Positions 9,185 to 48,514 of a stretch of 64,000 nucleotides of DNA are shown piece by piece (the stretch's first letter is position 1; each line of letters starts with the position of its first letter). Under the pieces are notes generated by a model. That model did not search any database and was not told the origin of the DNA. It saw only the letters and a list, made by a program, of their open reading frames with translations. The translations under genes were made by a program, and so were the position numbers. The DNA comes from Trichosphaerium sp. ATCC 40318 (lineage: Eukaryota > Protista > Tubulinea): assembly GCA_038496445.1 (NCBI GenBank), contig JALMLS010000072.1:1-64000 (forward strand), given 5' to 3'.

Positions 9185-10283
9185 ATGGCCCTCAGTCAAC
9201 AAGCTGTACAGAAGCAGCTCGAAAATATGGTCAGCTTCATGAAAAATGAGGCTAAAGAGAAAGCGAAAGAGATCGCTGTGAAAGCAGAGGGAGAGTTCAC
9301 AGAAGAGAAGGCGAGGCTTGTACAAGCACAAAAATTAAAAATTATGAATGACTTCAAGCGTCGTGAGCAAAAAGTCGAAGTAGCGAAGAAGATGTACGTG
9401 TAGTGATAATTATTGCCAAAACCACTGATTGTAGCGCTAAACAAAACCCGTAGCGCATTTTCGAACGAAAAGAACAGAGCGCGTCTTAAGAAGCTTAAAG
9501 CACGCGAAGAGGTAATGACAACAATTCAAAACCAACTTCACTGCGTAATTTGACCCAACAAACGCGTAGGGCCTATTGAGCATCTTCGAAGACACAAAAC
9601 AGAGTCTACTAGAGTTAACAGCAGACAAAGCCAAGTACACAGAGTTGCTCAAGAAAATCCTGACTCAAGTACGCACCACAGCCCCATTTTAATTTTACAA
9701 GCCTTTCTAATGAGAAAAAAAAATCTAGGGTGCCCTCAAAATGGACGAAGAGAATCTGTCGGTGAAATGTCGTGAAGTAGACAAATCCCTTGTCGAGTCC
9801 CTACTATCTCAAGTTGCTGATACTGTCCAATCAGAACACAAACTAAAGGTGACATTCAAACTCGAAGACACTTTTTTGGCTCCACCACCAGACCCAAACC
9901 AACAACAAACAAGAACATGGTAAACATACATTTTCACTTTAGCTGTAAAAAAGGACTCAAAAAAAACTCAAAAAACTACATTTTGACACACGCTTCCAAA
10001 AACTCACACTTTGGTAGTTACGGTGGTGTACAAATCTCCAGCAGCAATGGTAAAATCGTAGTTAACAACACTTTGGATGCCAGGTAATTTACAAACTATT
10101 GTTTGCGCTAAAAGAAAGAGACGAAGGGGTGATTGCCATAAAAACCCCAGACGTTCCATTTACAAAACGGAAAAAACACGAAAATCAGCTAACAAACCCT
10201 GTAGGTTATCCATTGCTTGTGAAATTGCACTTCCTGAAATTCGTGCTCTCTTGTTCGGTCGCGCAGACAGAGGCAACATCTAA
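9185..10283 (+). CDS. ATP6V1E: V-type H+-ATPase subunit E, multi-exon
   Basis: MALSQQAVQKQLENMVSFMKNEAKEKAKEI..AEGEFTEEK; GGVQISSSNGKIVVNNTLDARL; LPEIRALLFG. Confidence 0.95.
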
Positions 10284-10546
10284 GGGTCGTTTTGAAAACC
10301 ACACGGAAGCAAAAATGCTGTTTTTGACCTTGTAAAAAAGAAACAAGACAATAAATATTACATAGCCTCCCTGCACAAATGTTTTGTAGGGCAACCACGT
10401 GCATCACACGTTAAAAGTGCGCATGAAGTAAGACACAAAGGAGTGCAGGCAATATTATTTTATTGGCTTTTGTACAAAATGTGTGCTAGGTAGGCACGGT
10501 ACATCTTTCCGAGCGTATCTTGCGTAGGTGATGATTAATAAGCCAT

Positions 10547-11462
10547 TTATTTTTTCTTGCTGGCCTATTACGGAGTGAGAAATAGCCTTGGTGCGTGCGA
10601 AATGCCGCAAACAAATAGAGCAGCGTTAGCGTACGTATTTCTTTGTCCATTCCTTGACCGTTTTGTTAAATGCACTCTTGTTCGTGCGGTACTGTACAGC
10701 CACAGTCTCTTCGAGAGGGGAGTCTAGGTTTTTGTTAAATAACAAAAAGGGAAATGTTTTATAGTTGTTGTGCTGTTAAAAGCAAGTAAAAAAAAAAAAA
10801 GAGCATTACAAAAAATAGTACGCACCAACGTTTGGTTCGGCGAGCATTTGGCGTATGGTAGCGAGCACTAAAGGTGAGTTGGTATATAAAGCATATTCGT
10901 AGTAATTAAAGGCATACCATCACTGATTTTTAATTGAGGACTCCAAGAGTTACCAAGGATTTCAGCGCAAATTTGTCCGTCTAAAAAACTCGTTTAGCGT
11001 GCGAAATCATAAACGATTTTCACGGAAAGAACCATATATACAAACCTTTTTGACGTATGTTTGGGTGGTAAGTCTTGGTTAAGAACGTAACCTAAAATTG
11101 TTGGTTAACACAAAAACGTTTGGCTTTCGTTTAAAACAACTCCAAAAACTTCTTTGGCGTTTCTAACCTCTGGAGGTTTAAATGGATACTCGCTCGGTAC
11201 TGCGAGTTGTATGCTGAAGGTTCCTTTCTCGTATGGCGAGTCTGGCTACGCAGGTTTAGATCAGATGTTAAAACTTATGGTAGTAACCGTACAGGCCCTT
11301 TAATAGTGCACTTCCAGCTGTAAAGATTCTCCCCATCCAGGTCCGTTGTTGCCCATGGGATAGGCGAGGTCTTGAGCAATTTGTACTCCTGCAATCCACC
11401 AGTAAACAATTGACAAGCGCCGGTAGCGAATTTACCTTTTGAAGTCTTCTTTGTGCTGTCAT
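10547..11462 (-). CDS. Ubiquitin-conjugating enzyme E2 (Ubc4/UBE2D/UBE2L-like), multi-exon
   Basis: Spliced: MTAQRRLQKE..KGPDSPYEKGTF..YPFKPPE..YHPNI..GQICAEIL..WSPQLKI. Catalytic Cys and HPN motif are present. Confidence 0.92.
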
Positions 11463-11601
11463 CTGTGTAACGTTGTGAGCACTGAAAACCGAAGCAACTT
11501 GACTGGCCTACAAAAAATGACGCGAGACAAAAAAAAAGAGCAAACTATCATTTCGCTAAAACACTGCCAATAATCAAACCCCTACCTCCTTGGTTCTCAA
11601 T

Positions 11602-12234
11602 ATGCCTAGACGAGCCTCAAAAAAACGAATACAGCAAGTTGTACAATCTCAAACAAAACAACCACCAGCTTTTGCCGTGAAGAGCAGTAACATAAAGAAA
11701 AAGAAGAGAAAACGCGAAGGAGAGAGGAAATTGCTGTTAGAAAGTACGTTTTCACCTTGTAGTCATTGCATACGCCAAATTATGGCCTTGAACGCGTTGT
11801 GACGTTGTTTGTACTGTTGAGAAATTAATAGTTATGTTTTAAGAATTGGCGTTACAAAAACTTGAAGAGCGCAAGTTAAAGGGTGGTGATGACATTGACG
11901 TTGGTACGTGACAACACATTTTTTTTGTATCAAATTGACACATGTGTCCTTAGGATCAATGGAAGATCCTCTCGTCGACGTTTTGCGTAAACGTAGAATA
12001 CCTGTGCGACAGCAACAATCTGCCCAGGCTGCGCGAAGAGATATATTGGCGTCAGGTTAGTTGCATTTAGACAAATACATTTGATACTAACGTACAACCC
12101 TATCTGTAGAGCAAAAGCAGTACCAGGCAGTGTTGAATCACCAATCGTTCAAATCAGATCCGTTTGCAACTATACAAATGCATCTACGGAACAAGGTAGC
12201 CGCACAGCGTAAAGAAATTTTCAACGAGGAATGA
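11602..12234 (+). CDS. Ribosome biogenesis protein SLX9/FAM207A-like, 4 exons
   Basis: Basic N-terminus KKKKRKR. C-terminal EQKQYQAVLNHQSFKSDPFATIQMHLRN resembles the SLX9 signature. Confidence 0.7.
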
Positions 12235-12465
12235 TGACATGTCTGTCACATTCAATTCCCAGACTGAAATTGTACTATAAAAATAACTTGTACAACAGTG
12301 CCTTTACTGAGTAGCTGTACCACGCAAAGCAAGCATAATGTATTAACCTGCGTTGACTTTTCTTGACCGAATTGCATTTTTTTGATCTTTTAAAGCATCT
12401 ACGCCACTGCAAAGCGCATTTACGAACGTCACTTTTACCGACTTGTATAACCACAAAACCTCACC

Positions 12466-13058
12466 ATGTCAGCACCAGAAGAGAAAGGAAAAGCAACCAC
12501 CTCTGAACATATCAACCTTCGCGTTATAGCTCAAGTACGTACACACGTAATCCTTCTACCCATCCGCGTTTTCCGCGCGGGAGTTTTTTGGTGTTAAACT
12601 AAATGAAAGTGAATTAAAACGGTTGGTAGGACGGAACGGAGGTGTTGTTCAAGATTAAAAACAAAACGCAATTACGCAAACTTATGGACGCTTACTGCCA
12701 ACGACAAGCCATTGACCCTAACAGTGTCAGATTCTTATACGATGGTGAAAGGATACAAGAGGATCAAACACCAGCTGGTGTACGTAAAAATGCCATTTGG
12801 GGTCCAACCACAGCTGAATAATTTTTTTTTTTCGATCAAAGCTTATTTTCAAAACATTTTTATTTACTACCTGACTGCGCTTACACGCCTCATAGCTCGA
12901 TATGGAGGACCAAGATGTCATTGATGCCGTACTACAACAAACCGTAAGCTACCCTTTTTTTATTGTGCTTTTGTCTACACTTTGGTTGTATTGCTTGGTT
13001 TTTTCGCTATGTTAGTAATGGCAGTTGCGCTGACTTTTTTTTGCAGGGTGGTTGTTAA
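12466..13058 (+). CDS. SUMO: Small ubiquitin-like modifier (SUMO), 4 exons
   Basis: [69 protein letters not shown]. Confidence 0.97.
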
Positions 13059-13203
13059 ACGCGAATATTGAGAAAAAAAAAATGGGCTTGTTATTTTACA
13101 GGGCCTGTTGCCGTCCACTATATGTACATTGATTCTAATAAATGGAACGTCGCTTTGGTGTCCCGCCATCATTCTGTCTTTTGGATTTTTGTGATTGGAT
13201 TGT

Positions 13204-15349
13204 TTAGTCTCGTGTGCGAATAACGGCTTCGTCCTTAAGGTCTGGCATTGATGAAGTTTTTGTGGCGTGTGCGTTGATGTTTCGGCGTTTCCTCCGTGTG
13301 CTCTCGTCCTGTTTTCGTTTTGCAGCAGCAGCCTTGTGTATACCAGGAGGCAAGTGACGGCTGTTGTTTATTCGGCGCACTTGTGGCATGTGCTTGTATC
13401 GCTCGATCAGCGCTGCGCGGTAGTTTTGTGCGTGTCTCTGTGGTTTGTCTTGTATGCCAATAGGCGTCGATGCGTCCGCCTTCCATATGCGCACGTTACC
13501 TTCTTGACTTCCAGACAATACGTATCGCCCGTCGCGACTGAATCGAGCTGTATAGATCCTAACAAAAAAACGCAAATGTTAGGCATTGCAAACCTTGATT
13601 AACTACACAATCCGTCACGAACTGTTAGGATAGCTTACCTCTTCATGCGTCTGGTGTGGTACACTTCTTTGCTTTTAAAGCTGTGATCTTTGGAGTCTGG
13701 GAATATCCTGAGCGTCCTGTCAAAGGATCCAGTCACAAACTCGTCTCCAGAAGGTGAATAATCGACATCCAGCCTACATGGCGCAGTTAGTAGGCATTGT
13801 GCATGGAAAAAAAGAAAAATGGATCATTAGGCGTACACTGCAGCAACGTGGCCTCTGAACACTGTAACAGGTTTTTCGAAGCGGCGCATGTCGAATTTAT
13901 ATACATTTCCATCATCGCAAGCCTGGCCACAGAGTCAACGAGAACAAAGCTTGTATGTGACAAGTTAACGTACCAATGCAAAGTAAAATGTTCTTTGTGG
14001 ATTCCAAGATGAAGTGTTGCATTGTTGCTGTACGTGAAGTAAGTTGTTGGTGTTGTTGGGAAAGAACATTTAAAAAAAACAGTTGGTGTTAAATGTTTTG
14101 GAGAAACAAATTATTTTGTGCAATTCACGTACTGCCATGATAACCTTTTTTACTGGTGATCCAGCGCGTGTATCGTAAAGTGTCACAGATCTATAAAAAA
14201 CAGTGTTAGCGGATTGTAGTGGACTGTGTGGTGCGTGCTTGTCAATGGCAGTAGATAGAAGAATGTCACGCTCTACAGGGCAGAAAGACACCGAGGTGAA
14301 GGCTTCACCCCAATCCCATGTGGCAACTGGTTCGCTTCTATCTATGTTCCATACATGGACTTTATCAGATCCTCCTGTTGCGAAGGTGTCCTCTTTGTGT
14401 ACCGAGGTAAGTAACGATATACAAAAAAAAATGTCCATTGACAAAACATTAATGGTCGACAAAGGGGTGGGGTACCTTTCGGGTATTTAAATGCAATAGA
14501 TGAGAATGGTCTGTAATTGGGATCAGCAAATACAATTGCTGGTTTGTGTTCCTTTCTGCTTTGAAGGTAGCTCTGTGGATTGGATTGCATCAGCAATGAG
14601 TCTGTCGACCGTCCAGCAGGCGTAGCATCAATCTGTGCGAGGCTCTCTGTGGCCCATACTTTGACAGTCTTGTCATCACCAATCGACAACAGTATACCGT
14701 CTTGCCTACAAGTGCGTCAATTCAGTACATGCTGACTCTTGCTAGCCCACAAAAAAATAAAAAAACAGGAGCAGATGAAATGACAGTTGATGTGGCTGCG
14801 TGTGAAATGTCGTACCCCATAGCCAAACCGCGTACGAATCCTCTGTGCGCTGATAGAGTGCATGTACACGTCCTAGTGGTGTTTGTTAGCGCAAGGCAGA
14901 CGAGCCTGTAGCTGTGCGTACTGAGCACTTAAGTCCCACAATTTTATCTCTAAATGGTAACGTCACATTTTGATTGTTATTCAAGGATTAATGTCGTACC
15001 GCCATCGCAAGCACCAGAGGCCAGGAATGTAACGTCGGAAGGGTGCGTTTCCATACAGTACACTGCGTCATTGTGATCTGGTAATGCGGCTATAAAGGGT
15101 CTGGCAAAGAGACGGTCTTGTCTAGGTGTCAGTTCGCTTCATTAATACGCACGTACCCATTTTTGTAGCAGTCAATGCCCTAGAGTATTCCCTAGCCCTC
15201 TCTACGTAGTGTTAATGCGTTTTGCGCGTATTTTACGCCTTACCTAACGGGTGTAACGCAGGATCAAGGTTTGTCATTTTTCTGGCGTGTTCCGTGCTCC
15301 TTTGCCTCGTGAATTTCTCAGCATCTCTTGAAATTGCTTTAATCCTCAT
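13204..15349 (-). CDS. DCAF13: DCAF13/Sof1 WD40 SSU-processome protein, multi-exon
   Basis: MRIKAISR N-terminus, NLDPALHP, LFARPF, VTGSFDRTLRIF, YHTRRMKR, and a Sof1 C-terminus (NVRIWKADAS..YKHMPQVRRI..RHLP). Confidence 0.93.
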
Positions 15350-34360: not shown

Positions 34361-34768
34361 TATTTTCGTGGTTAGATTAGTGTTCAAACACCGAAACACA
34401 TTTATCTTTAAATATTCGCTGTCACGCGTACCTTACAAAGATGCGTTATAAAAATAAAAATTCGTTAAAGAATGCATTAGTTGAAAACGTTGTATTTGCA
34501 ATTGTTTACATAAACACTTTAACATGCAAAAGTCTAAGGGAATAATTTAATGTAAACTGTTTTTCACCGTAGCGTTTACATGGAACTTGCACACAAAGTG
34601 GTGACGTTATGGGTTAAACTTGCGTTGATAATCATATCAGAGCGTTGAATGTAACGTAGATAGAACTTTACACGTTTGTCATTTTAATAGTTGGAAAAAT
34701 AAGGGCGTAAGCTGTCACATCAAGAGAGTTTTAGTTAATGATTGACTTAACATTTTCCCACATTCATG

Positions 34769-35725
34769 TTAAAGCACAGACACGGAGCTTGTGTTAAACT
34801 GTACGCCGCTATCATAGATAGCTCCTGGTTGAACAGAAGGTATAATGTTATTTGATGTAATGACTTGACCGTCTTCAGAGGTAACCCGGATAGACAACGG
34901 CATTGCTAATCCAGAACCTTGAACTTGAATCAGCCAATAGTTGTAGTCTTGTCTAGCTGGTTTTTCCCATGTTGTATCAGTAGCTTGCTTCAACTCAAGA
35001 AGTTTAACACCGCCTATGCCACCGACATTGAATGCTTGCAGTTCAAACCACCACTTGTTTGAACCAGTCTTCACTCTGTACTACAGGTATTCAATACAAC
35101 ATGCAAACGTATTCTCCTTTACCTTCAGATTTCCAGATACATCACAAGTTACTTGGCGATATTGTGTCTCCATTACGCCAGCAACGGGATTGGCTAGAAT
35201 AGTGAATGCCTCTTCGCTGAGATCCAAATGGTCCTGGACAGGTGAGTATAACCCATAAGAACTATTTAAACGAATTCCTTGTACCTTATCACCGCAGCAC
35301 CATTTAGGATTAGGCCCACAAGGACATTCATCTGTAACCTGTACAACAACTGTTGCGTTCGGTACACAACTTCCTTGTTTGTAGGGCGTGCTTTCAGCAT
35401 TCAGAAAGTAGGCACGTGCGTGACCGCAAAATTTCAAAGATAAAACAAGTACCTGAGGCATTGTATCTCAAAACATTCGCCACATACGCCAGCTTTATTA
35501 TAAAACGCTTCATTAGGGGCAGCGATGTGCCTGAATGGAAACGTTTTGGAAGGAATAGGTCCGTAACCACATGCACCATCGTCAGGAGTGGTGTAGTACG
35601 TAGAACGCCCAGGCTGACTTGTTGTTAGCTTATTCCGTCTTGTTTAGACTAACCTTCCAAGGCCCAAGTGGCTTGAATGAAACGCAAAGTAAAAGTAGAG
35701 TCGAGAGTAACAAAAGATAACGCAT
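34769..35725 (-). CDS. Expansin-like secreted protein (DPBB plus CBM63-type domain), multi-exon
   Basis: Signal peptide; STYY..GACGYG; CGECFEIQC; VVQVTDECP; HLDLSEEAF; YRQVTC; C-terminal RQDYNYW and PLSIRVTSEDGQ. Confidence 0.9.
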
Positions 35726-36190
35726 TTTAATTCTGGGTTGTACTCACTTTTGACTTAAAATCACGTGACATTTACAATGTACTAATACCCTTAGCGCTAT
35801 GATAAGTATACAACAGACAACGCAATACACTATTTTTTCAAGCGCACATTAGGGACGTGCCATGGCTTTAAATTAGGCTAAATTTCCGAGGAAGAGATTG
35901 CTTAACAACTGTATCTGTAGTATAGCCTTAGAATGTGTTATGTTGTAGTGGTAGCGCATCTAGAGACGTTTTGTTGTACAGCTTACTTAAAGTAACGTCA
36001 GGACGTGGAAAATTGTTTGGATTGCGTGGCATACTTGAAAATTAGCGAGTTTTCTACGGAAAAAATGTCATATAACAATAAATAGCACAAAGAGTGCAAT
36101 AACTAGACAAAACAACTAATAGAGTACGTTTGCGACATGTTGTAGTGTCAAACCAGTTTGTTTGTTTAAAAAACGTGCTTACGTGCCTAG

Positions 36191-37572
36191 TCCACGGTGA
36201 GGACTATTTTATCATTCGGTTGGACATCAGGGAGTACCTGTAGGTCAGCTAGGTACAATATTTAGTAAAACCTGATTCTCTAGCGTATTAACGTTTTAAA
36301 AGGCGGTTTATCCAAACCGCTCTGACCTCAGGCGGCGTTGATGCGTCCTCCACCAGCAATGGTGTTGAGGTAAGAAATTTTCACGTTACCATTCATGTTT
36401 ACGCGTGTAGGACCTCCGCCTCCGCCCCTCAAGGAGATTTAAGCGACGTGTGACGCGCAAAGGCAAAATTTTGGCATCTCAACAAGAGCGCACAGAAAAA
36501 TCAGGCAGAACAAGAACACGCGTACGACGCAGGAACCCACATAACAGAGCCCAAAAAAAAGAACAAAAAGCTCTAGATGTGAACAACACAGATCAATTTC
36601 CAAAGCTCTCTGTACGCTTTCACATTGATATTATCAGCGTATACGCCCTTTTGAATCCAAAACTCGCACATCGTTCCCAAAAACCGACCATGAATTCTCG
36701 CTTATTAACGTTAATACGATTGTTAGGAATCTGAGACTATTGTATCTACAACTCCTGTTGCAACAAGCCTACAAACATACAAACAAGTACTTCAAGAGTC
36801 ACAAAGAAAGACACTCATCCTCTCTGCAACTCCTTTCAAGAAGCAACGCATGTTGGTACGTGTCCAGAAGCCAATACATAATTTTTCCATAAAAGTAAAT
36901 GAGTTTGACACGCCAATCTCAAAAACTCATTTTTGGTGACTCTTCTCCACTAACTCACCTCAGGTTGGCATAAGCAAAGTAAGAGACGAGTTTATTGCAC
37001 CAACACTTCCAGTTCCAAAAGTACAAGAAAGAATCATGCGCAAAGCGCCACGGTACAAGACATTTTTACCAAAAATGATGTATCCATTTTTTTACTAAAT
37101 TCCACCAAGTACTTCCATCACTCGTACTGTCAAGGACAAAACTTTCGTACCACTTCTTCCAGTATATCAAGCGAAACAAACAACAACACGCACATCATAC
37201 AAACAAAAAGCTCAACGTGCTGTACGCATCTATGTTTGGCCTTCACTGCTATAAATACCAATGTCTTACTTGTTGTATTAGTGGATTGCTAAGTTGCTCG
37301 CCCGTCGTGGTATTCACTTGCTTGTACCTTCATACATGTTCAATACAATGGCTCAAACAGACAAGTTGACGTTCCTTAAGAGCCCATCATCAACAAATGT
37401 AAGATTGTTTGTCTCACACGTGATATTTTTAATCTGATTTTTTTAGTCCGGTATTCTAGCGTATAGACCTAAAAATCAAACATCCAAACTTCCTTCATTT
37501 ACATCATGCTCAAGACAACTTCAAAATCAATTTCAAAACACATGGCTACCACAAACAATACTAAGCTGTTAG
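36191..37572 (+). CDS. Uncharacterised basic, low-complexity spliced ORF upstream of and overlapping hisB; start codon unresolved
   Basis: Frame stays open across 7 GT-AG introns (donors ~36253, 36370, 36612, 36856, 37053, 37222, 37399) to TAG 37570-37572. First in-frame ATG is only at ~36850. Confidence 0.55.
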
Positions 37573-38513
37573 AAGCAACAAAACTCATCCTTTGTACGCC
37601 TAAAATCTCCTTTAGTTTTTGTCCTACTGTTTGTAAAATCTAACACGTGGTCTAGCTTCCTCCGATACAGAACTAGCTGCTGTGATGACTAAACTATCAT
37701 CAAGTGATGCACTTAAACTTGTAGAAAAAGTGTCTACTGCTTCAAAAAGTAAACAGAAAAAAACAACTTTAAGAAAAGCCACTGTAGAGCGTAAGACAAA
37801 AGAGACTCAAATCAGTGTATATGTCAATTTAGATGGTATGTGATATAGGCACTCTTTTAGCGCAAATACTAAATTAGTTTACTTTTGTAGGTTCAGGAAA
37901 AAGTAAAATCGATACAGGCATTGGTTTTTTGAATCACATGTTTGATGCTTTATCTAAGCATAGTATGATCAATATTGAAGTTACTTGTAACGGAGACTTA
38001 CACATTGACGATCACCACACAAGTGAAGATTGCGCATTGGCTCTAGGATCAGCCATTAACAAAGCCATTGGAGACAAAAAAGGCATTACAAGGTTCGTAC
38101 TTTTTATTTTAGTTTCTTTGCGCCTCTCTCCCATTGAAGCTTACTTTGAATCACTAATGCATTGCTAAAGATTCGGTATTGGATTTGCACCTCTTGACGA
38201 GTCATTGTCACGTGCTGTTGTAGATTTCTCAGGACGTCCATCAGCCCACGTTGATCTCAAGTTCACCAGAGAAAAAATTGGCGATATCTCAACTGAAATG
38301 CTCACTCACGTGTTTGAGTCAATTGCTATGAACGCAAACATGACACTACATGTTGAAGTACTTAAAGGAACTAATAACCACCACAAGGCAGAATCAGCAT
38401 TTAAAGCCCTTGCCCAAGCACTGCGACAAGCTGTCGCAATTGACCCAAAAAGACTAGACCAAATCCCATCAACAAAAGGAACATTAGGAGAACAACAAAG
38501 TCAAAAACCATGA
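37542..38513 (+). CDS. hisB: Imidazoleglycerol-phosphate dehydratase with N-terminal extension, 4 exons (alternative in-frame ATG at 37506)
   Basis: RKTKETQISVYVNLDG, TGIGFLNHM, GDLHIDDHHTSED, APLDESLSRAVVDFSGRP, GTNNHHKAESAFKA, IPSTKG. Confidence 0.96.
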
Positions 38514-40459
38514 GCACAGACAAACCTAAAGGTAAATAGAGAACATTTGAATCCATTGGAATACTAACGATATTTGCGCATAGTTATTTTGGTAAAGACG
38601 TCTACGTCCAACTTGGGATCGATTATTGCTGCTTTTGAACGCTGTGGAACAACCCCAGTTATCTCAACAGATCCAAAAGATATCGAAACAGCTGATCATG
38701 TTGTTGTACCTGGAGTTGGAACAGTCGGACAAGCTATGGCCGTCATTAATGAAACAAAAGTGAACAAAGTTTTATGTGAACGCATCAGAAAGGTATGTAC
38801 ATACTCCACTTACGTTGTTTTACTAATATACTTCTTCCTAAAGGGACTTCCTTGTCTGTTTGTATGTGTTGGCACTCAACTATTGTGTAATGATAGCGTG
38901 GAGAACCCAGGAGTACAGGTAAGATTTTAATGACCATGCATTTTGAAAGAAAAGTCTTGACACGATTTAGGGCCTCGGTATTATTGATACAACAGTCCAG
39001 CGATTCCCAGATACTGTGGTTGTACCACAACAAGGATGGAACAAAGTTTACGTTGAAGGAAAGAGTAACTATATTGATGAGGATGGCTATGCGTTCTTTT
39101 CAAACTCTTTTTGCTTGAGACACAAACCTAAGGATTGGACAGTTACAATGTGTACTCACGCAGGTCCATTTATTGCGTGCATGGTACGAACACTACTACC
39201 AATAGCCCAATGTCACTAAGCATTATAATTTTAGGAATACGGTGCTATCCTTGCTTGTCAATTCCATCCTGAACTCTCTGGCACTTTCGGTTACAGCGCA
39301 CTTCGAAACTGGTTGAAAAAATCAAAATCACTCGTAAAACCGTACACTATCAGAGGCGGCGAGGATATCATAATTGCAAAAGATGATGCTTCATCAAACC
39401 TTGCAAGAAGAGTAGTGCCTTGCTTAGATGTGAGGAACGGTGTTGTAGTAAAGGGTATACACCAACTTTTATTTCCATGTTTGTATTTAATTGCTAATTG
39501 GTTTTAGGTATTAAGTTTCAAGGACTTAAAGAAGCCGGTGATCCAGCCGAGCAAGCTGCAAAATACGAAAGAGATGGTGCTGATGAGTTAGTCATGTTAG
39601 ATGTCTCTGCAACACCTGAAGGCCGTAAAACATGTACGATTTTTTGAGCTTCATTGCTTTTTCTTATTGTTGTTTAGCTCTCGAGACAATCAGGATTATT
39701 CGTGGTCAACTGTCTATTCCACTCACTGTAGGTGGTGGTATAAGGACTGTTGATAACGCACGGGCAATTCTAGAGGCTGGCGCTGATAAAGGTATGTTAA
39801 TGGCACTCAGTCTAGAAGTTGTTTAACAATCTAACGCGTATTTTTTAGTATCCATCAACACAGCTGCTGTGAGAAACCCTCAAATTCTTACTGACCTTGC
39901 ACACCAATTCGGTCGTCAATGTACTGTTCTAGCCATTGATGCTTCGTCTTGTGGTGAGGGCAAATGGGAAGTTGTTGTCAAGTCTGGAAAAGAACGTACA
40001 GGCATGGATGTTATCGAATGGGCAAAATCTGCTGTAGAAAAAGGAGCAGGAGAGATCTTGCTTACTTCCTGGGACAGAGATGGCACCAAACAGGTACTAC
40101 AAAACGCCCTCACCTGTGTAATAATATTCGATGATAGGGATATGACATTGAGCTACTTAATGCTATGCGCAAGGCCGTGAGCGTTCCAATTGTTGCATCA
40201 GGTACAATTCTTTGAATGTTGTTAGTATACTGTTTTGTTTACGCTTTATCTTTAGGTGGTGTTGGAAACCCAAAAGATCTAGTCGATGGACTTAAAGCAG
40301 GAGCCGATGCTGTATTAGCTGCATCAATTTTTCACTACGGCGAGTATACGCCAAACCAAGTTAAAGATATTCTACAAAAAACCCATAAAATCAGACACGT
40401 TAATGTACGGTTGCTTTATTAATAACTCTTATCAACTAAAACTATTATTTCAGAAATGA
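38510..40459 (+). CDS. hisHF: Fused imidazole-glycerol-phosphate synthase HisH-HisF, 11 exons (ends at 40422 if the last intron is retained)
   Basis: HisH: [29 protein letters not shown]. Linker, then HisF: [60 protein letters not shown]. Confidence 0.95.
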
Positions 40460-42246
40460 TAGTTCCTTCAATCAGTATTAAAGGTGGAGAGGCTTTACAG
40501 CTGTCAATTGACGATCCAAGCGTCGTATTGGTAAATGCTGGTGATCCAGTTCCTCTAGCAAAGAAGTATGGTATTATTGGCGAAATAACAGTTTTTGACT
40601 TGGATGCTTCCATGGGCACTGGATCAAACGAATCGACCATCAAATCATTACTCAAGCTTGCAAATTGTAGAGTAGGAGGTGGTATTAACACTGTGAAAGC
40701 AGGTATTGATTGGTTGAACGCTGGAGGTAAGCAACTCGTTTGTTGTTGGCCAAGAGTACTTATGTTTTCTGTAGCCTTCAAGATAATTCTTGGGACCGCA
40801 TCAACTCCTGAAATTCTTGCAATGCTTCCTAAAGATAGAGTGGTCTCATCTTTAAAAGTAATGACAGGAGAAAATGAGGTCAGCAGCTGGAAGACTGATG
40901 ACGGCAAACTCTTTATTGAAAAACTTGAAGAACTCAAACCGTTCGTCTCTGGATTCCTCGTTACCTTTATTGAACACGAAAGGCGTATGGAAGGTATGGC
41001 CATAAATAAGTACAGCGCATTGTTCTAAGTTACATGATAAAGGGATTGATGTCACAATGGTGAGAAAACTGAAAGAAGCTGTTGGCAAAGCTCATGAATT
41101 AACTGTCGCTGGAGGCATTTCATCTGTTGGTGAAGTCAAATCTCTTGCTGACATGAAAGTACGACAATACAGTCTCGACGAAGACGCTTTTACTAAATTA
41201 TATTACTTTTTAGGTCAAAGCTCAAGTCGGTATGGCCATACACACAGGAAAGCTAAACCTAGGCGAGGCGTTTGGTAGCCTTATCATTTCTGATCGTCCG
41301 GATGGTTTGTTCCCAACCGTAGTCGTTAATGAGTACCAGCAAGCTCTTGGTTTTGTGTATTCGTCGAAAGAGAGTATAGCAAAAGCCGTGGAGATGCAAG
41401 CAGGTGTTTACTGGTCTAGAAAACGAGGACTTTGGATTAAGGTAAAAATCATTGATTCAAATTTTCATTGTTGACATCATTCAACTGCAGGGTCTCACTT
41501 CTGGTGCCACGCAAAAGCTCATTAGTATAAAAACCGATTGTGATACCGATTCTCTATGCTTTGTAGTCGAACAAAAAGGTACTAAAATAGCCCAAGAGCC
41601 TTCCTCGGAAACTCATCCCTTTTGTAGACCCTGGATTTTGTCACTTGAACAGAATGTCATGTTTTGGTCGTGGTACTGGTTTACCAGATCTCATGAATAC
41701 CCTAGAAAACAGGTACCATCATTAACAAGTTTAGTATCACATTAACATGTTTTTAAGGAAAATAAACGCACCCAAGGGATCGTACACAAAGAGACTTTTC
41801 GATGACCCTAAACTGCTTGATGCCAAAATTTTGGAAGAAGCCAATGAACTTATTGATGCTACAGAGAGAGAAAATATGATCGGTGAAGCCGCCGATGTTA
41901 TATACTTTACACTTGTCAAATGTGCCAAACACAACATTTCGTTGACGGACGTGGAAAAAGGTGCGGAAATTGTTTTGGAATTTTTTTTTGCGGAGAAATT
42001 TTGTCCCTGGTTTCTTTCTGACGTAACAATTTGTACCACACCATACGAGGCGTAGTTTGACTAGATTATCATTAAAATAGTCGTATGATGGGCTTTTAAA
42101 GGCGGTTTTAAAGTATTTTATCTAATAAGCCTTTAGAACTCGACAGACGCGCTAGAAAAGTATCTCGTAGAAAAGGAGACGCTAAGGAACATATTGTAAA
42201 ACAATTAGAAGCACACAGAAAACAACAACAAGAAGAATCTAAATAA
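40456..42246 (+). CDS. hisIE: HisA-like TIM barrel fused to PR-AMP cyclohydrolase (HisI) and PR-ATP pyrophosphatase (HisE), 8 exons
   Basis: TIM barrel: DLDASMG, RVGGGI, ILGTA, TVAGGI, VGMAIHTG. HisI: YWSRKRGLWIKGLTSG, DCDTD, FCH, SCF. HisE: GSYTKRLF, KILEEANEL, EAADVIYF, RRKGDAK. Confidence 0.93.
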
Positions 42247-44973
42247 TGGCAACAAGAAACCTTAAAATCGTTACAGAAAGCGACGTAGCTGCTATTAGCA
42301 CTAAAACTGATCCTGTCAGCCCAGAAACACTCGGTAAAGCCGCACAAATCGTCGCAGACGTTCGCAAACGTGGTGATGAGGCTTTACAAGAGTATGCCGT
42401 TAAATTTGGAGACCTGAAGGTATGAATCACTTTCAAAACGCTGTGCGTTCACACTTTTCGCTAAACATCGTCATCAGGAAGGCGAAAGCATGATAGTTCC
42501 AAAGGAGGACCTCAAAAAAGCCTTTGAAGCTCTAGACAAAGAACAACAAGAAATGTTGAATCGCGTTGCCTCGAGGTATTTTTTTGGCCTACTTTTTTTG
42601 AATTGAAAGTTTTTTTCAAATGTTTCCACGTGTCTAACCCTTGTTAAGGATCAGAACCTTTGCGCAAGCACAGAGAAGTAGTGTCACAAACATGACACAA
42701 CAAATTGACGGTGGAAGCGCTGGGCACTATGTTGATCCAGTAGAATCTGCCGGTTGTTATGCACCAGTACGCCATTATTCATTTTTAATTGCTCGAGTCT
42801 AATGTACGATTAAGGGTGGTCGCTACCCATTGCCTTCGAGCGTGTTGATGACATGTATTACCGCACGTGTTGCTGGCGTTAAGAACGTTTGGGTCGCTTC
42901 TCCAAAGCCACAACAAATCACAAAGGTAGGCTATTTTAAATCAAGTCTCAGAGTCTTACTTTCATTAGGCTGCTGCATATGTCGCTAACGCAGATTCTCT
43001 TCTTTGTGTTGGCGGAGCTCAAGCCATCGCTGCTTTGGCTCACGGCACAGCTACCATTCCAGCATGTGATGCAGTAGTAGGACCAGGAAATGCTTTTGTA
43101 ACTGGTACACACTTATTTTTCTCATTACTGGATTAATTTCTGTTTTAGCTGCCAAACAACTCATTGCTGGTAACGTTGCTATCGATACCTTGGCTGGGCC
43201 TTCAGAATGCTTAGTAATCGCTGACGAACAGGCAAACCCAGCAATCGTAGCTGCTGACCTTTTGGCTCAGGCTGAACACGATACTGACGCTAGAGCTATA
43301 CTCATTGCGCTTTCTCAAAAAGTAGCTGATGATGTTGACGCAGAGATCTCAAAGCAACTCGAGACCCTCCCTACAAAAGAAGTCGCTGCTGCAGCTTTAA
43401 AGAACAGTTTCTGTCTTATTGCTAAATCAAGAGAAGATGCTGCCAAACTCGCAAATCAAATCGCCCCAGAGCACTTAGAACTCCACGTTCAGCGTACACA
43501 CGAACTTGAGCGCAAAGTACAACACTACGGTGGTCTATTTATCGGTCAAGGCGCAGGCGAAGTCCTTGGTGATTACGGTGCTGGTCCAAACCACGTACTA
43601 CCAACACGTGGAGCAGCACGTTCTTCTGGCGGTCTATCAGTTTTCACATTTTTGCGTATTCGCACGTGGATGAATATTACAAATCTTCATGGTACGTAAA
43701 TTCTCCAAGAGTTTTGGTTTCTTCGTATGCTTTGTACTGGATTAACGTGTTTCCTTTAGCTGCAGAAAAGCAAATTAACGATAGTGTTATGCTTGCTCGC
43801 TTAGAAGGTCTTGAAGGACATGCTAGAGCCGCTGAGAAGCGTCTAGAACTCGTTAAAGATGAAAGTGTTCTTCCACCATCTGTTCTCAGAATGGGACTAC
43901 CAAAGGGAAGAATGGAACAACAGCTCATTAAGATTCTAGGAGGTACGCTTGTTTTTGAGTTTGTAGCGGTGTTTTTTTCCCTTTTTCTAAGATTGGATTG
44001 TAGACGGCGGTATTAAGATTGAAGTACCACCTAGAGGTTACAGACCTTCTATTTCACTAGACGGTGTTGATGTAAAGATGCTCAAGCCTAGAAATATTGT
44101 TGAAATGATCTCCGTCGGTTCTCGTGACGTTGGTTTTAGTGGCAGAGATCTTGTCGAAGAATTAAATGCTAATGTCAAGTTTGAAATGGATCTCAAGCTC
44201 AACCCAGTCAAGATAGTAGCAGCCGCACCTCATGATTTATTGGTTCAAGACGCAAACGCACCACATGGATGGAGACTTAAGGACTTGAATAGAGTACGTT
44301 TCTACTCAACAATTTTGAGATACTAATTTTACTATTTTTTAGCCATACCGTGTTGCCACTGAATACACTACCATTACTGCAAAGTGGATTAAAGAAAACA
44401 ATCTCAATGCTACCCTCGTACACACTCGTGGATCTACCGAGGTGTTCCCACCAGAGGATGCTGACTTTATTGTCGACAACACAGCAACTGGCTCTACACT
44501 GAAGGCTAATAAGCTAGAAATCTTTGACATCTTAATGAGATCTACTACTTGTATGTTCTCTAACGCCGAAGCTTCTGAAGACCCTCACAAGCGTAAGATC
44601 ATTGATACACTGAAATCTACCATAGAAGCAGGTACGCGAGTTACTACACACGTTTTTGTTTTCAGCAACTAAATGTTGCATTAGTTCTCACTGCTAGACC
44701 ACGCTACATGTGCGAATTCCATCTTGAAGAACACAGACTCGAAAGCGCATTGGTAACACTGCCTTGCATGCGGTCACCTACCGTTCACCAACTTGTTGGC
44801 GACAAGAACGGTTACTCTCTAAGAATCTGTTCAGACATGGTACATCTCTATCTTTACTGTTAATGTCTTCAAACCTAACAAATACTTAGAACCCACACAA
44901 ACTCATCAAAGCAATTAAAAGAGCTGGAGGACAAGATATAGTCATAACTAAGCCGCTTTTCGTCATCCCATAA
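42246..44973 (+). CDS. hisD-hisG: Histidinol dehydrogenase (HisD) fused in frame to long-form ATP phosphoribosyltransferase (HisG), 11 exons
   Basis: HisD: [78 protein letters not shown]. Then HisG: [48 protein letters not shown], and a C-terminal regulatory domain. Confidence 0.93.
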
Positions 44974-45057
44974 GACCCACGATAATACAAAAAACCAAAT
45001 AAAAAAACCCAAAAACCATTTAAAAAAATACAACATAAAAAAAAAGCCAACCATCAA

Positions 45058-47424
45058 ATGAGCGATAATTCACTTGACTTTATCCGACAAGACCTACCAG
45101 ACCTCAAGGTCTACTCCCCAATCAAGCCTCTGGAAGACAGAGCCGTTCAATTTGGCTTCTCAGTCGAGGCACGTGCACAAAATCAAAAAAAAAACTGGGC
45201 TTCGAAATTAACTGAAAGAAATAGGAGCTAGCCAAATTGGATGCCAACGAAAACGCTCACGGCCCACCTAAGGGTCTCGTAGAGAAACTTAAAACTATCA
45301 ACTATCACATTTACCCTGATCCAAGCCAAATCAAGCTTCGCGAAGGACTATCAGCAGTGGCTGGCATTCCTGCAGATCAAATCGTTGCTGGCGCTGGCGC
45401 TGACGAATCAATTGATTTGGTACTCAAAGTAGTTGGTCCAAACCGACCAATTATCATTACAAGTCCTACATTCTCAATGTACAAGTACTTTTCGGTACCA
45501 TACAATCAAAGTGTCATTAACGTGCAAAGGCTAAGTACGTTCAAACTTTTCGTGTATTTTTTTTTGGGTTGCAAGTATTCTCGTTTCTTGAATCTTGTTC
45601 TCTAGCTCACTTCTACTATTTAGTGCCTAGCTTTGAATTGGATGTACCAGGTATAATTAAGGCCATTAACGAGCACAAACCTGGCGCTGTATTCATTACG
45701 AATCCAAACAACCCTACTGGCAACATTGTAAAAGATGATGTCATAGTACAGCTCTGTGCAGTATGCAAAAAAACAAATTTATCCATCTATTCTCGCGTCT
45801 AACATGTCATCGAAATAGGAAAGCCGAAAGACTCGTACACTTGTTGTTATAGATGAGGCGTATTGCGAATTTGGTGGAAATGACTGTGTACCTTTATTGA
45901 AAGATAATGCCAACTTGGTCCTCTTACGGACATTCAGGTATGTCTATTGATGCAATTTTATTCAAATTCCTTTACTAAGCAAGCTTAGCAAATGGTCAGG
46001 ACTAGCTGGCTTACGCATTGGATACTCCATAAGCGCAAAGGCAATCGCCAATGTAATGATGTCTATCAAACAACCATACAACATTAGTGTTGCTGCTGAT
46101 GTTGCGGGACGCTACGCTCTAGAAAAGCGTGATGAACTTCTGGCCACCTGCGCTCAATTAATGTACGACTATTATAAAATACATCCTTGCCTTACAAAGT
46201 TATAGTAAGGAACGAGATCGCATGGTATCTCTGCTTGCTGAATTTTCCGATTTGATTCAACCGCTCCCAACGTACTCTAATTTTGTTCTATTCACTGTCA
46301 CTGGCGGCAATAAAGTTGCAAAACAACTACATGATGACTTGGAAAGACTTGGAGTGCTTATACGGTACTATGGCGGCAAACCAATCCTACAAAACTACAT
46401 CAGGTAATTTTTTTGACAACAAAAAACACTAAAGAACACCAGTCACGACTATCAAACTCACTTTTTTTAGAATATCTGCTGGACGCTCTGGAGATACTGA
46501 CAAGCTCATAGCGGCAATGCGATTGCTCCGCGATTCAAAAATACGAGAGAAAGTGACGAAACCAAAGGCCGTAAGTCCTGTTGCCAATACGAATTTGCTT
46601 TAGCTGCAATATCATAGTTTTTTATTTCTTATTCTATTGCTTAGATAATATTTGACATGGATGGTGTTTTGGCTGAAGTGTCGTCCTCATACCGTCAAGC
46701 GATCATCCACACTTGCAAGCATTTTGGAGCGAATATCACACGTGATGACATTGCTGAAAAGAAGGCATCTTCTGGTTTCAATAATGACTGGGATTTATCT
46801 CTTGCACTTATCACTGAACATGTTAAAGAAAATGTGCCATCTTTCCAACAAGTCAAAGATGTATTCCAAGACCTTTACCTTGGCACTGACGAAAAAAAGG
46901 GATTCTACACAACAGAGTCTCTCATACCTTCTAAATCCTTACTGGCATTTTGTGCTAACAAGGTACCACTTGCTATTGTAACTGGAAGACCAAAGGACGA
47001 AGCAAAACTGTACGCTCAAATTGAAAATCAAAAACACAAATTCTTATGTTTTGTTTTAGGTTCCTAGATCTATACGGCATTGGTGACTACTTCGGTCATG
47101 CAGTGTGTATGGAAGATACAGAAAAAGGCAAACCTGATCCTCAACCCGTTAAAAAAGCTCTGGATCTTCTTGGAATCACAGCAGGCAAAGATGGTGCGCG
47201 TTTTGTTCTACAAACCAACATTGACATTTTCATTTTTAGTAATCATGATTGGTGACACTCCGGATGACTCAAGAGCAGCTGTTGCAGCTGGGATAGTCGG
47301 ACTGGGTATTTTACCACCACATGATAAGGCAAACAAAAAACTTGCTGCTGTAATGACATCAGATAGTGTTGGTGCTACCTACGTTCTCCAAGACTTGAAT
47401 GAATTGCGACTACTCTTGTCGTAA
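45058..47424 (+). CDS. hisC: Histidinol-phosphate aminotransferase (HisC) fused to a HAD-family phosphatase (putative histidinol-phosphatase), 10 exons
   Basis: HisC: KLDANEN, YPDP, GAGADESI, NPNNPTG, VIDEAY, RTFSKWSGLAGLRIGY, SNFVLF, YIRISAG. HAD: IIFDMDGVL, IVTGRP, KPDP, MIGDTPDD. Confidence 0.93.
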
Positions 47425-48443: not shown

Positions 48444-48514
48444 GGGCCTTGCCTGGAATCGAACCAGGGCCACTTGAACCCAAATCAAGTATTTTACCAC
48501 TTAACTACAAGGCC
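48444..48514 (-). tRNA. tRNA-Pro(UGG)
   Basis: Minus strand GGCCTTG..CAAGGCC acceptor stem, anticodon arm CTTGA-TTTGGGT-TCAAG, T-arm CCTGGTTCGATTCCAGG, and a downstream T5 Pol III terminator. Confidence 0.93.

Follow-up and report, generated by a model that had tools for sequence, protein, structure and literature searches.

An ATGA stop-start overlap between hisB and hisH-hisF in an intron-rich histidine gene cluster of the amoeba Trichosphaerium

The window analyzed here, 64,000 nucleotides (nt) of Trichosphaerium sp. ATCC 40318 (Tubulinea; assembly GCA_038496445.1, contig JALMLS010000072.1, positions 1 to 64,000 of the forward strand), contains a nuclear gene cluster for the whole histidine pathway on the plus strand (37506..47424), arranged as hisB / hisH~hisF / hisA~hisI~hisE / hisD~hisG / hisC~HAD, with fused genes joined by tildes. 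The open reading frames (ORFs) of hisB and hisH-hisF overlap by four nucleotides, ATGA, and the locus thus raises the question of how the AUG of the second frame is reached, as eukaryotic ribosomes are generally held to be poor at reinitiation after long ORFs without a viral tethering element. The explanation that accounts best for the evidence below, with a probability of about 50%, is that a spliced polycistronic his mRNA is translated by termination-reinitiation at the AUGA.

The upstream gene, hisB, encodes an imidazoleglycerol-phosphate dehydratase of 270 aa (37506..38513, plus strand) in exons 37506-37593, 37656-37834, 37890-38093 and 38172-38513, which form an open spliced frame. Pfam IGPD matches were obtained for exon 3 (E 9e-25) and exon 4 (E 1e-29), the latter over 38172-38510, corresponding to the C-terminal half of the domain. 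Read directly from the window, the hisB frame at 38496-38531 ends in CAA AGT CAA AAA CCA TGA, and the -1 frame from 38510 reads ATG AGC ACA GAC AAA CCT AAA G, followed by GTAAAT. The hisH ATG (38510-38512) and the hisB TGA (38511-38513) form the ATGA overlap (38510..38513, plus strand), which is present in both the genomic sequence and an RNA contig. This ATG is the first of its frame, which, as read from the sequence, is open only from 38444. Exon 1 of hisH-hisF (38510..38531, plus strand) encodes MSTDKPK and opens a Val codon with its last base; in the RNA contig it directly continues hisB. It is followed, 22 nt from the ATG, by a 52-nt spliceosomal intron (38532..38583, plus strand; GTAAAT...ATAG) with a TACTAAC-like branch sequence, AATACTAAC. 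The placement of the hisB stop and the hisH ATG, the -1 frame and the MSTDKPK mini-exon with its intron, all part of the original prediction, agree with the spliced RNA contigs, and the two genes had been correctly identified.

Contigs of four public runs were aligned to positions 37300-43200. Three runs matched, and the matching contigs derive from RNA, since introns are absent from all of them. Record 1 of run X1 (3,975 nt) comprises the 5' leader, all hisB exons, the ATGA, the hisH-hisF exons, the hisF/hisA joint, and hisA~hisI to position 41442, and all three hisB introns appear in it as GT..AG joints. Over 38172-38529 it aligns with no gaps and two single-nucleotide polymorphisms (SNPs), and then continues with the joint 38529->38582, which skips 52 nt and becomes GT..AG when the cut is moved by +2. 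Directly upstream of the overlap lies a homopolymer of five A (38503..38507, plus strand), at which a sixth A would place HisB and HisH-HisF in one frame. The original prediction had asked for this run to be verified in accurate reads; five A were found in the window, in the X1 contig and in record 5 of X3, which comes from another study, spans 38364-38514 without any difference, and ends 2 nt past the ATG without bridging the junction. No inserted or deleted letters were found anywhere in the contigs aligned to 37300-43200. As the RNA contig crosses the junction without an insertion or deletion, the stop-start overlap and the A5 run are real, the in-frame fusion that A6 would give is ruled out, and the dominant RNA is not edited here.

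Between X1 and the window there are 25 differences in 5.9 kb (~0.4%), nearly all of them at third codon positions; the run is therefore independent of the assembly data, and public RNA data include another strain or allele of the species. X6, deposited under a different organism label, shows matches of 99% identity or more. On exon models curated against the RNA joints, one of the 25 differences falls in the leader and 24 are coding, and 23 of these 24 are synonymous (hisB, 6/7; hisH-hisF, 8/8; hisA~hisI, 5/5; hisD, 4/4). About one random change in four is expected to be synonymous. The excess of synonymous differences shows that each cistron is subject to purifying selection in the frame modelled for it, and, as all SNPs in the downstream cistrons are synonymous, these encode functional proteins whose frames require a new start, being inaccessible from hisB otherwise.

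The downstream gene encodes a hisH-hisF fusion, imidazole glycerol phosphate synthase (480 aa, 11 exons; 38510..40459, plus strand), whose terminal TGA overlaps the hisA ATG after splicing. The segment directly behind the first intron (38586-38792) aligns with bacterial HisH (4gud) from residue 6 (E 7e-7), and, because the post-intron exon aligns from this residue, the hisH ATG lies exactly at the start of a free-standing HisH. In agreement, the full spliced HisH part shares 47% identity with an alphaproteobacterial HisH starting at residue 1. The HisF part gives matches at E 1e-19 to 1e-36, and the exon encoding the HisH-HisF linker aligns to residues 190-251 of yeast HIS7 (1jvn). Catalytic motifs are intact in the spliced model, including the HisH Cys in VCVGTQ and HPE, and CLDV and AID in HisF.

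The hisB/hisH overlap is not a product of chance, since the hisF/hisA junction of the same cluster (40405..40459, plus strand) also forms an ATGA once its intron is spliced. Removal of this 49-nt intron (40405-40453) yields AAT AAA TGA over the hisA ATG (40456-40458), and a contig piece of X1 starts at 40454, directly after the intron acceptor. As this second ATGA exists only after splicing, it points to selection on the sequence of the mature mRNA. A possible third overlap, TAATG between hisE and hisD (42244-42248, plus strand), requires removal of a 176-nt intron (41961-42136) with the unusual donor GTGCGG, and so depends on a putative splice model. In record 2 of X1 just a 54-nt intron (42083-42136) is removed and 42029-42082 is retained, a form that ends the hisA~hisI~hisE frame at a TAG (42053-42055) approximately 136 spliced nt before the hisD AUG; the X1 contigs leave 41443-42028 uncovered. 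Because the only RNA contig at hisE/hisD shows this partial splicing, the RNA-verified overlaps in the cluster number two, not three. The hisG/hisC junction (44970-45060) is unlike the others and consists of an A-rich spacer of ~90 nt without any overlap.

The his cluster has ~40% GC, the same as its surroundings, and more than 20 introns, which together mark it as a long resident of this genome, in which an unconstrained 4-nt overlap would be expected to have drifted apart. The 20 introns modelled are 44-78 nt long, begin with GT and end with AG, and often contain CTAAC-like branch sites.

Two simple routes to the hisH AUG were considered and rejected. Leaky scanning is ruled out by the 13 AUGs that precede the hisH AUG in the hisB mRNA; 32 AUGs precede the hisA AUG in the hisH-hisF mRNA. 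Read-through of the UGA would extend the hisB frame by only 11 codons (AQTNLK, and LFW after the splice) to a TAA. The sequences upstream of the junctions are short, non-conserved, A-rich tails with little predicted structure. The last 30 nt before the restart AUG contain 17, 17 and 19 A at the three junctions (57-63% A), and by A content the first two of these stretches rank in the top 4.7% of 30-nt windows in the hisB mRNA and in the top 0.6% in that of hisH-hisF, respectively. At the first junction, the tail is the HisB C-terminal sequence GEQQSQKP (38487..38509, plus strand), which is not conserved and follows the family end PSTKGTL (38466-38486). HisB homologues match the query to approximately residue 105/113, in the PSTKG(T/V)L region, which is usually their own C-terminus, so that GEQQSQKP represents eight extra residues that double as a 23-nt leader of the hisH AUG.

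According to the proposed model, hisB and hisH-hisF would be consecutive cistrons of one spliced nuclear mRNA holding most of the histidine pathway. A ribosome finishing hisB would terminate at the UGA (38511-38513), a part of the post-termination ribosomes, as 40S or 80S, would remain on the unstructured, A-rich mRNA, and a retained ribosome would move two bases and reinitiate at the AUG (38510-38512) to produce HisH-HisF; an identical step would follow at the hisF/hisA AUGA. We infer the presence of both cistrons on one RNA molecule, and this route to the downstream AUG, mainly from the continuity of the RNA, the selection on each frame and the splice-dependent hisF/hisA overlap, which weigh most. 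The model is further favored by the absence of frameshift and leaky-scanning signals, by the position of the ATG as the first of its frame and at the start of a free-standing HisH, by the A-rich, low-structure tails shared by the junctions, and by a precedent for cis-element-independent reinitiation in yeast. In selected yeast strains, 80S ribosomes can reinitiate on bicistrons independently of cis-elements, and do so better with shorter spacers (PMC11952965).

Several points weigh against this model. Known eukaryotic reinitiation after long ORFs needs a tether such as TURBS, a ribosome-binding site upstream of the termination codon (PMC10275272), and the ORFs here are 270 and 480 codons long. 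The three junctions were searched over the 109-120 nt preceding each, and no TURBS core (UGGGA in the mRNA; TGGGA, GGGA or TGGG were looked for) was found, although a tether specific to this lineage may exist. The comparison with eukaryotic viruses made in the original prediction accordingly stands as a mechanistic likeness and does not extend to this element. Furthermore, X1 is the sole run that bridges the junction by at least 31 letters on both sides, and the transcript data are contigs built from 31-letter words, in which overlapping transcripts can merge, so that a single molecule is not proven. Serial reinitiation would also lead to steeply falling yields along the cluster. Finally, representative, word and metagenome searches found no related species in which conservation of the overlap could be assessed. 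The more specific proposal, that ribosomes restart serially at AUGA after ORFs of 270 and 480 codons on one capped, multiply spliced mRNA with no TURBS-like tether and helped only by the A-rich tails, is tentative, and we regard it as somewhat more likely to be wrong than right.

The alternative that survives best, which we nevertheless consider unlikely, is that HisH-HisF is translated from separate or alternatively processed mRNAs. These could have a 5' end inside hisB, or arise from a precursor of which some copies are cleaved or trans-spliced immediately 5' of 38510 and others polyadenylated after the hisB stop; the AUG would then be reached by ordinary cap-dependent scanning and the ATGA would be a compact relic. 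The contigs do not separate one long transcript from overlapping ones, and candidate trans-splice acceptors are present, namely an AG (38499-38500) 10 nt upstream of the hisH AUG and the real 3' splice site 2 nt upstream of the hisA AUG. The overlap itself could be inherited, as bacterial operons have exact overlaps at hisB/hisH: among metagenomic bacterial loci, L011 and L012 carry an ATGA and L006 a GTGA. Against this, no loose (non-matching) contig ends were found at 38490-38515 in the three runs, although assemblers clip short tips. The 4-nt overlap of the two ORFs means that no single cut leaves both intact, so that one precursor cannot give both complete monocistronic mRNAs. Separate promoters and poly(A) sites embedded in the coding exons of one junction after another would also be odd beside the ~1.8 kb (about 35700-37505) between the upstream neighbor gene and the hisB ATG. 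The splice-dependent hisF/hisA overlap argues for selection on the mature mRNA instead, and, as H-F-A is not the usual bacterial order, it is not simply inherited.

A change of frame producing a HisB-HisH-HisF fusion is improbable. It could occur through -1 slippage (from AAA 38505-07 to 38504-06), through polymerase stutter or editing adding an A, or through splicing, and an additional A, or slippage by -1 on A AAA, would indeed give an in-frame fusion. The predicted products differ in size, with ~30 kDa for HisB, ~52 kDa for HisH-HisF and ~82 kDa for the three-part fusion. Large his fusions in other eukaryote-like contigs, such as a 1,401-aa HisD-HisC-HAD-HisB protein, lend this alternative some plausibility. 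Canonical -1 frameshifting is unsupported, as it would act here without a slippery heptamer and without a stable downstream structure: no X XXY YYZ motif is present at the three junctions (CAA AAA CCA TGA, AAT AAA TGA and TCT AAA TAA), and the spliced 90-mers downstream fold no better than shuffled sequences (z +1.2, -0.5 and +0.3). A run of five A is short for transcriptional slippage, and the RNA contigs show A5 with no insertion. Editing of mitochondrial RNA that duplicates a neighboring letter has been described for the amoeba BB2 (PMC5421314); nuclear insertional editing at this locus is rejected, with RNA and DNA being identical at the A run. Joining of a cryptic donor, GTCAAA (38500..38505, plus strand), to the 38583 acceptor would remove the stop from the mRNA and keep HisB-HisH-HisF in frame, and the geometry allows it. 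This donor is weak, with C at position 3 where the 20 modelled introns have A (19) or T (1), it is unused in the RNA contig, and it has no counterpart at hisF/hisA. A fusion would, moreover, have no need for a precise ATG with a natural HisH N-terminus.

Internal ribosome entry is slightly less probable still. In this case the A-rich, unstructured 25-30 nt would recruit the 40S subunit directly and independently of hisB translation, for which the A content and weak predicted structure at all three junctions speak; the tracts are short and also protein-coding, and an exact stop-start overlap would be needless. An assembly artefact hiding a true A6 and one fused ORF is highly improbable: homopolymer errors are common in long-read assemblies, but the Illumina-derived RNA contigs of the two studies agree on A5, one of them carries SNPs and is hence independent of the assembly data, and the same type of error would be needed at three junctions.

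The cluster may descend from a transferred bacterial operon or may have been assembled in eukaryotes. The adjacency of hisB and hisH is bacterial, and in a search with the C-terminal hisB exon the nearest HisB was alphaproteobacterial with ~70% identity, compared to 62-64% for chytrid, sponge and other eukaryote-like entries. A representative search with this exon gave no match above 70% identity, and a word search likewise found bacteria at ~70%. In a 74-row HisB tree, the amoeba protein falls in no supported clade. The orders H~F-A, E-D and D~G are not common in bacterial operons, and H~F-A and I~E-D are of a eukaryotic or fungal type. A simple bacterial origin thus appears weakened by the lack of tree placement, the yeast HIS7-like linker and the eukaryotic-like gene orders. 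Two metagenome scans yielded nothing close to the cluster, and an exact look-up of the hisA ORF returned no record. An apparent HisB-GATase fusion (P0132) was rejected as a frameshifted high-GC bacterial read.

Eukaryotes fuse his genes in many combinations, as illustrated by the eukaryote-like metagenome contig L001, which encodes the intronless four-part HisD-HisC-HAD phosphatase-HisB fusion mentioned above (1,401 aa; 10001-14206). Its neighbors include UCH/USP9X-type and RRM genes, and the IGPD portion of the fusion shares 62% identity with the final hisB exon. In addition, P0035 is a 774-aa HisC-HAD-HisB protein. The amoeba cluster shares with yeast HIS7 the HisH-HisF fusion and a linker of similar length, and its I-E-D order matches fungal HIS4, a HisI-HisE-HisD protein. 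In contrast to these enzymes, B/H, F/A and possibly E/D are unfused in the amoeba, each pair lying one base out of frame with its stop and start codons overlapping.

Translational coupling at ATGA in bacteria and archaea (PMC6728339, PMC10666635) has the same geometry and the same -1 frame and occurs at the same hisB/hisH pair. Unlike bacterial his operons, the amoeba locus is nuclear and intron-rich, with an intron 22 nt after the AUG, and lacks a Shine-Dalgarno sequence at a working distance. The only AGGAG (38486-38490) ends 19 nt upstream of the hisH ATG, which is too far for a Shine-Dalgarno function, and may be chance or a relic. Furthermore, a hisH-hisF fusion precedes hisA, whereas the bacterial order is H-A-F. 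Reinitiation in viruses, as at calicivirus VP1/VP2 and the influenza B M1/BM2 UAAUG (PMC10275272, PMC3035654, PMC2793014), likewise involves a long upstream ORF with stop and start a few nucleotides apart and a change of frame. The amoeba differs from these TURBS-dependent cases in lacking the UGGGA core, in the cellular, metabolic nature of the mRNA, and in having two or three such junctions in series.

Among cellular systems, 80S reinitiation in yeast (Sun, Bock and Li 2025, PMC11952965) requires no specific cis-element, favors short spacers, and was proposed as a route by which eukaryotes could activate acquired operons. That case was laboratory-induced in synthetic constructs, whereas the amoeba locus would be a natural, evolved and spliced case, in which the reinitiating ribosomal species may be 40S or 80S. 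The enterobactin operon of Wickerhamiella/Starmerella yeasts (bioRxiv 10.1101/399394, PMC11043216) is a same-strand pathway cluster with bacterial-looking junctions for which bicistronic transcripts have been reported. It was horizontally acquired, while for the amoeba cluster, with its dozens of introns, several domain fusions, a HisH-HisF linker aligning with yeast HIS7 and a HisB outside any supported clade, bacterial descent is no more than possible. Green algae produce capped nuclear polycistronic mRNAs with two to six ORFs, each of which is translated (Gallaher et al. 2021, PMC7896298). In the algae, the ORFs are separated by spacers and translation of the second ORF has been linked to the Kozak-like surroundings of the first AUG, in contrast to the 4-nt overlap and 13 prior AUGs found here.

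Operons in eukaryotes, stop-start reinitiation in viruses and the acquisition of bacterial operons are all known separately. As far as the searchable literature shows, an intron-rich nuclear biosynthetic cluster chained by bacterial-style 4-nt overlaps has not been described, and nothing specific was found there on a his cluster or on polycistrons in amoebae. If termination-reinitiation is confirmed, the locus would provide a naturally evolved example of ribosomes reinitiating efficiently on a eukaryotic cellular mRNA once a long ORF has been translated. In that event it would represent an extant transitional form between operons and fused multidomain enzymes, and would reveal how an mRNA with at least 10 exon junctions after the first stop escapes nonsense-mediated decay. 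The cluster offers a natural system for asking how post-termination ribosomes stay on an mRNA, and bears on the survival or emergence of operon-like arrangements in eukaryotes. As each overlap is one base from a fusion, it also bears on the birth of multidomain enzymes such as HIS7 and HIS4.

At its N-terminus, HisB carries an extension of ~65-70 aa before the IGPD domain (positions 37506-37710), rich in Ser, Thr and Lys, which might serve as a targeting peptide or be the remnant of a linker, as found before IGPD in the HisC-HAD-HisB fusions P0035 and P0008. The 5' leader of hisB is spliced (intron 37399-37446), and the RNA contig reaches ~830 nt upstream of 37447. An upstream ORF beginning at the ATG at 37349 (MAQTDKLTF...) crosses the leader intron, overlaps the hisB ATG (37506) in a different frame, and could control how ribosomes enter the first cistron. 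A tRNA-Pro(UGG) gene on the minus strand (48444-48514; ARAGORN, Rfam 67 bits) is located just downstream of the his cluster. The product of the upstream neighbor gene (positions 34700-35700, minus strand) is a secreted protein rich in Cys, possibly resembling expansin or DPBB, with the motif CPCGPNPKWCCGDK.

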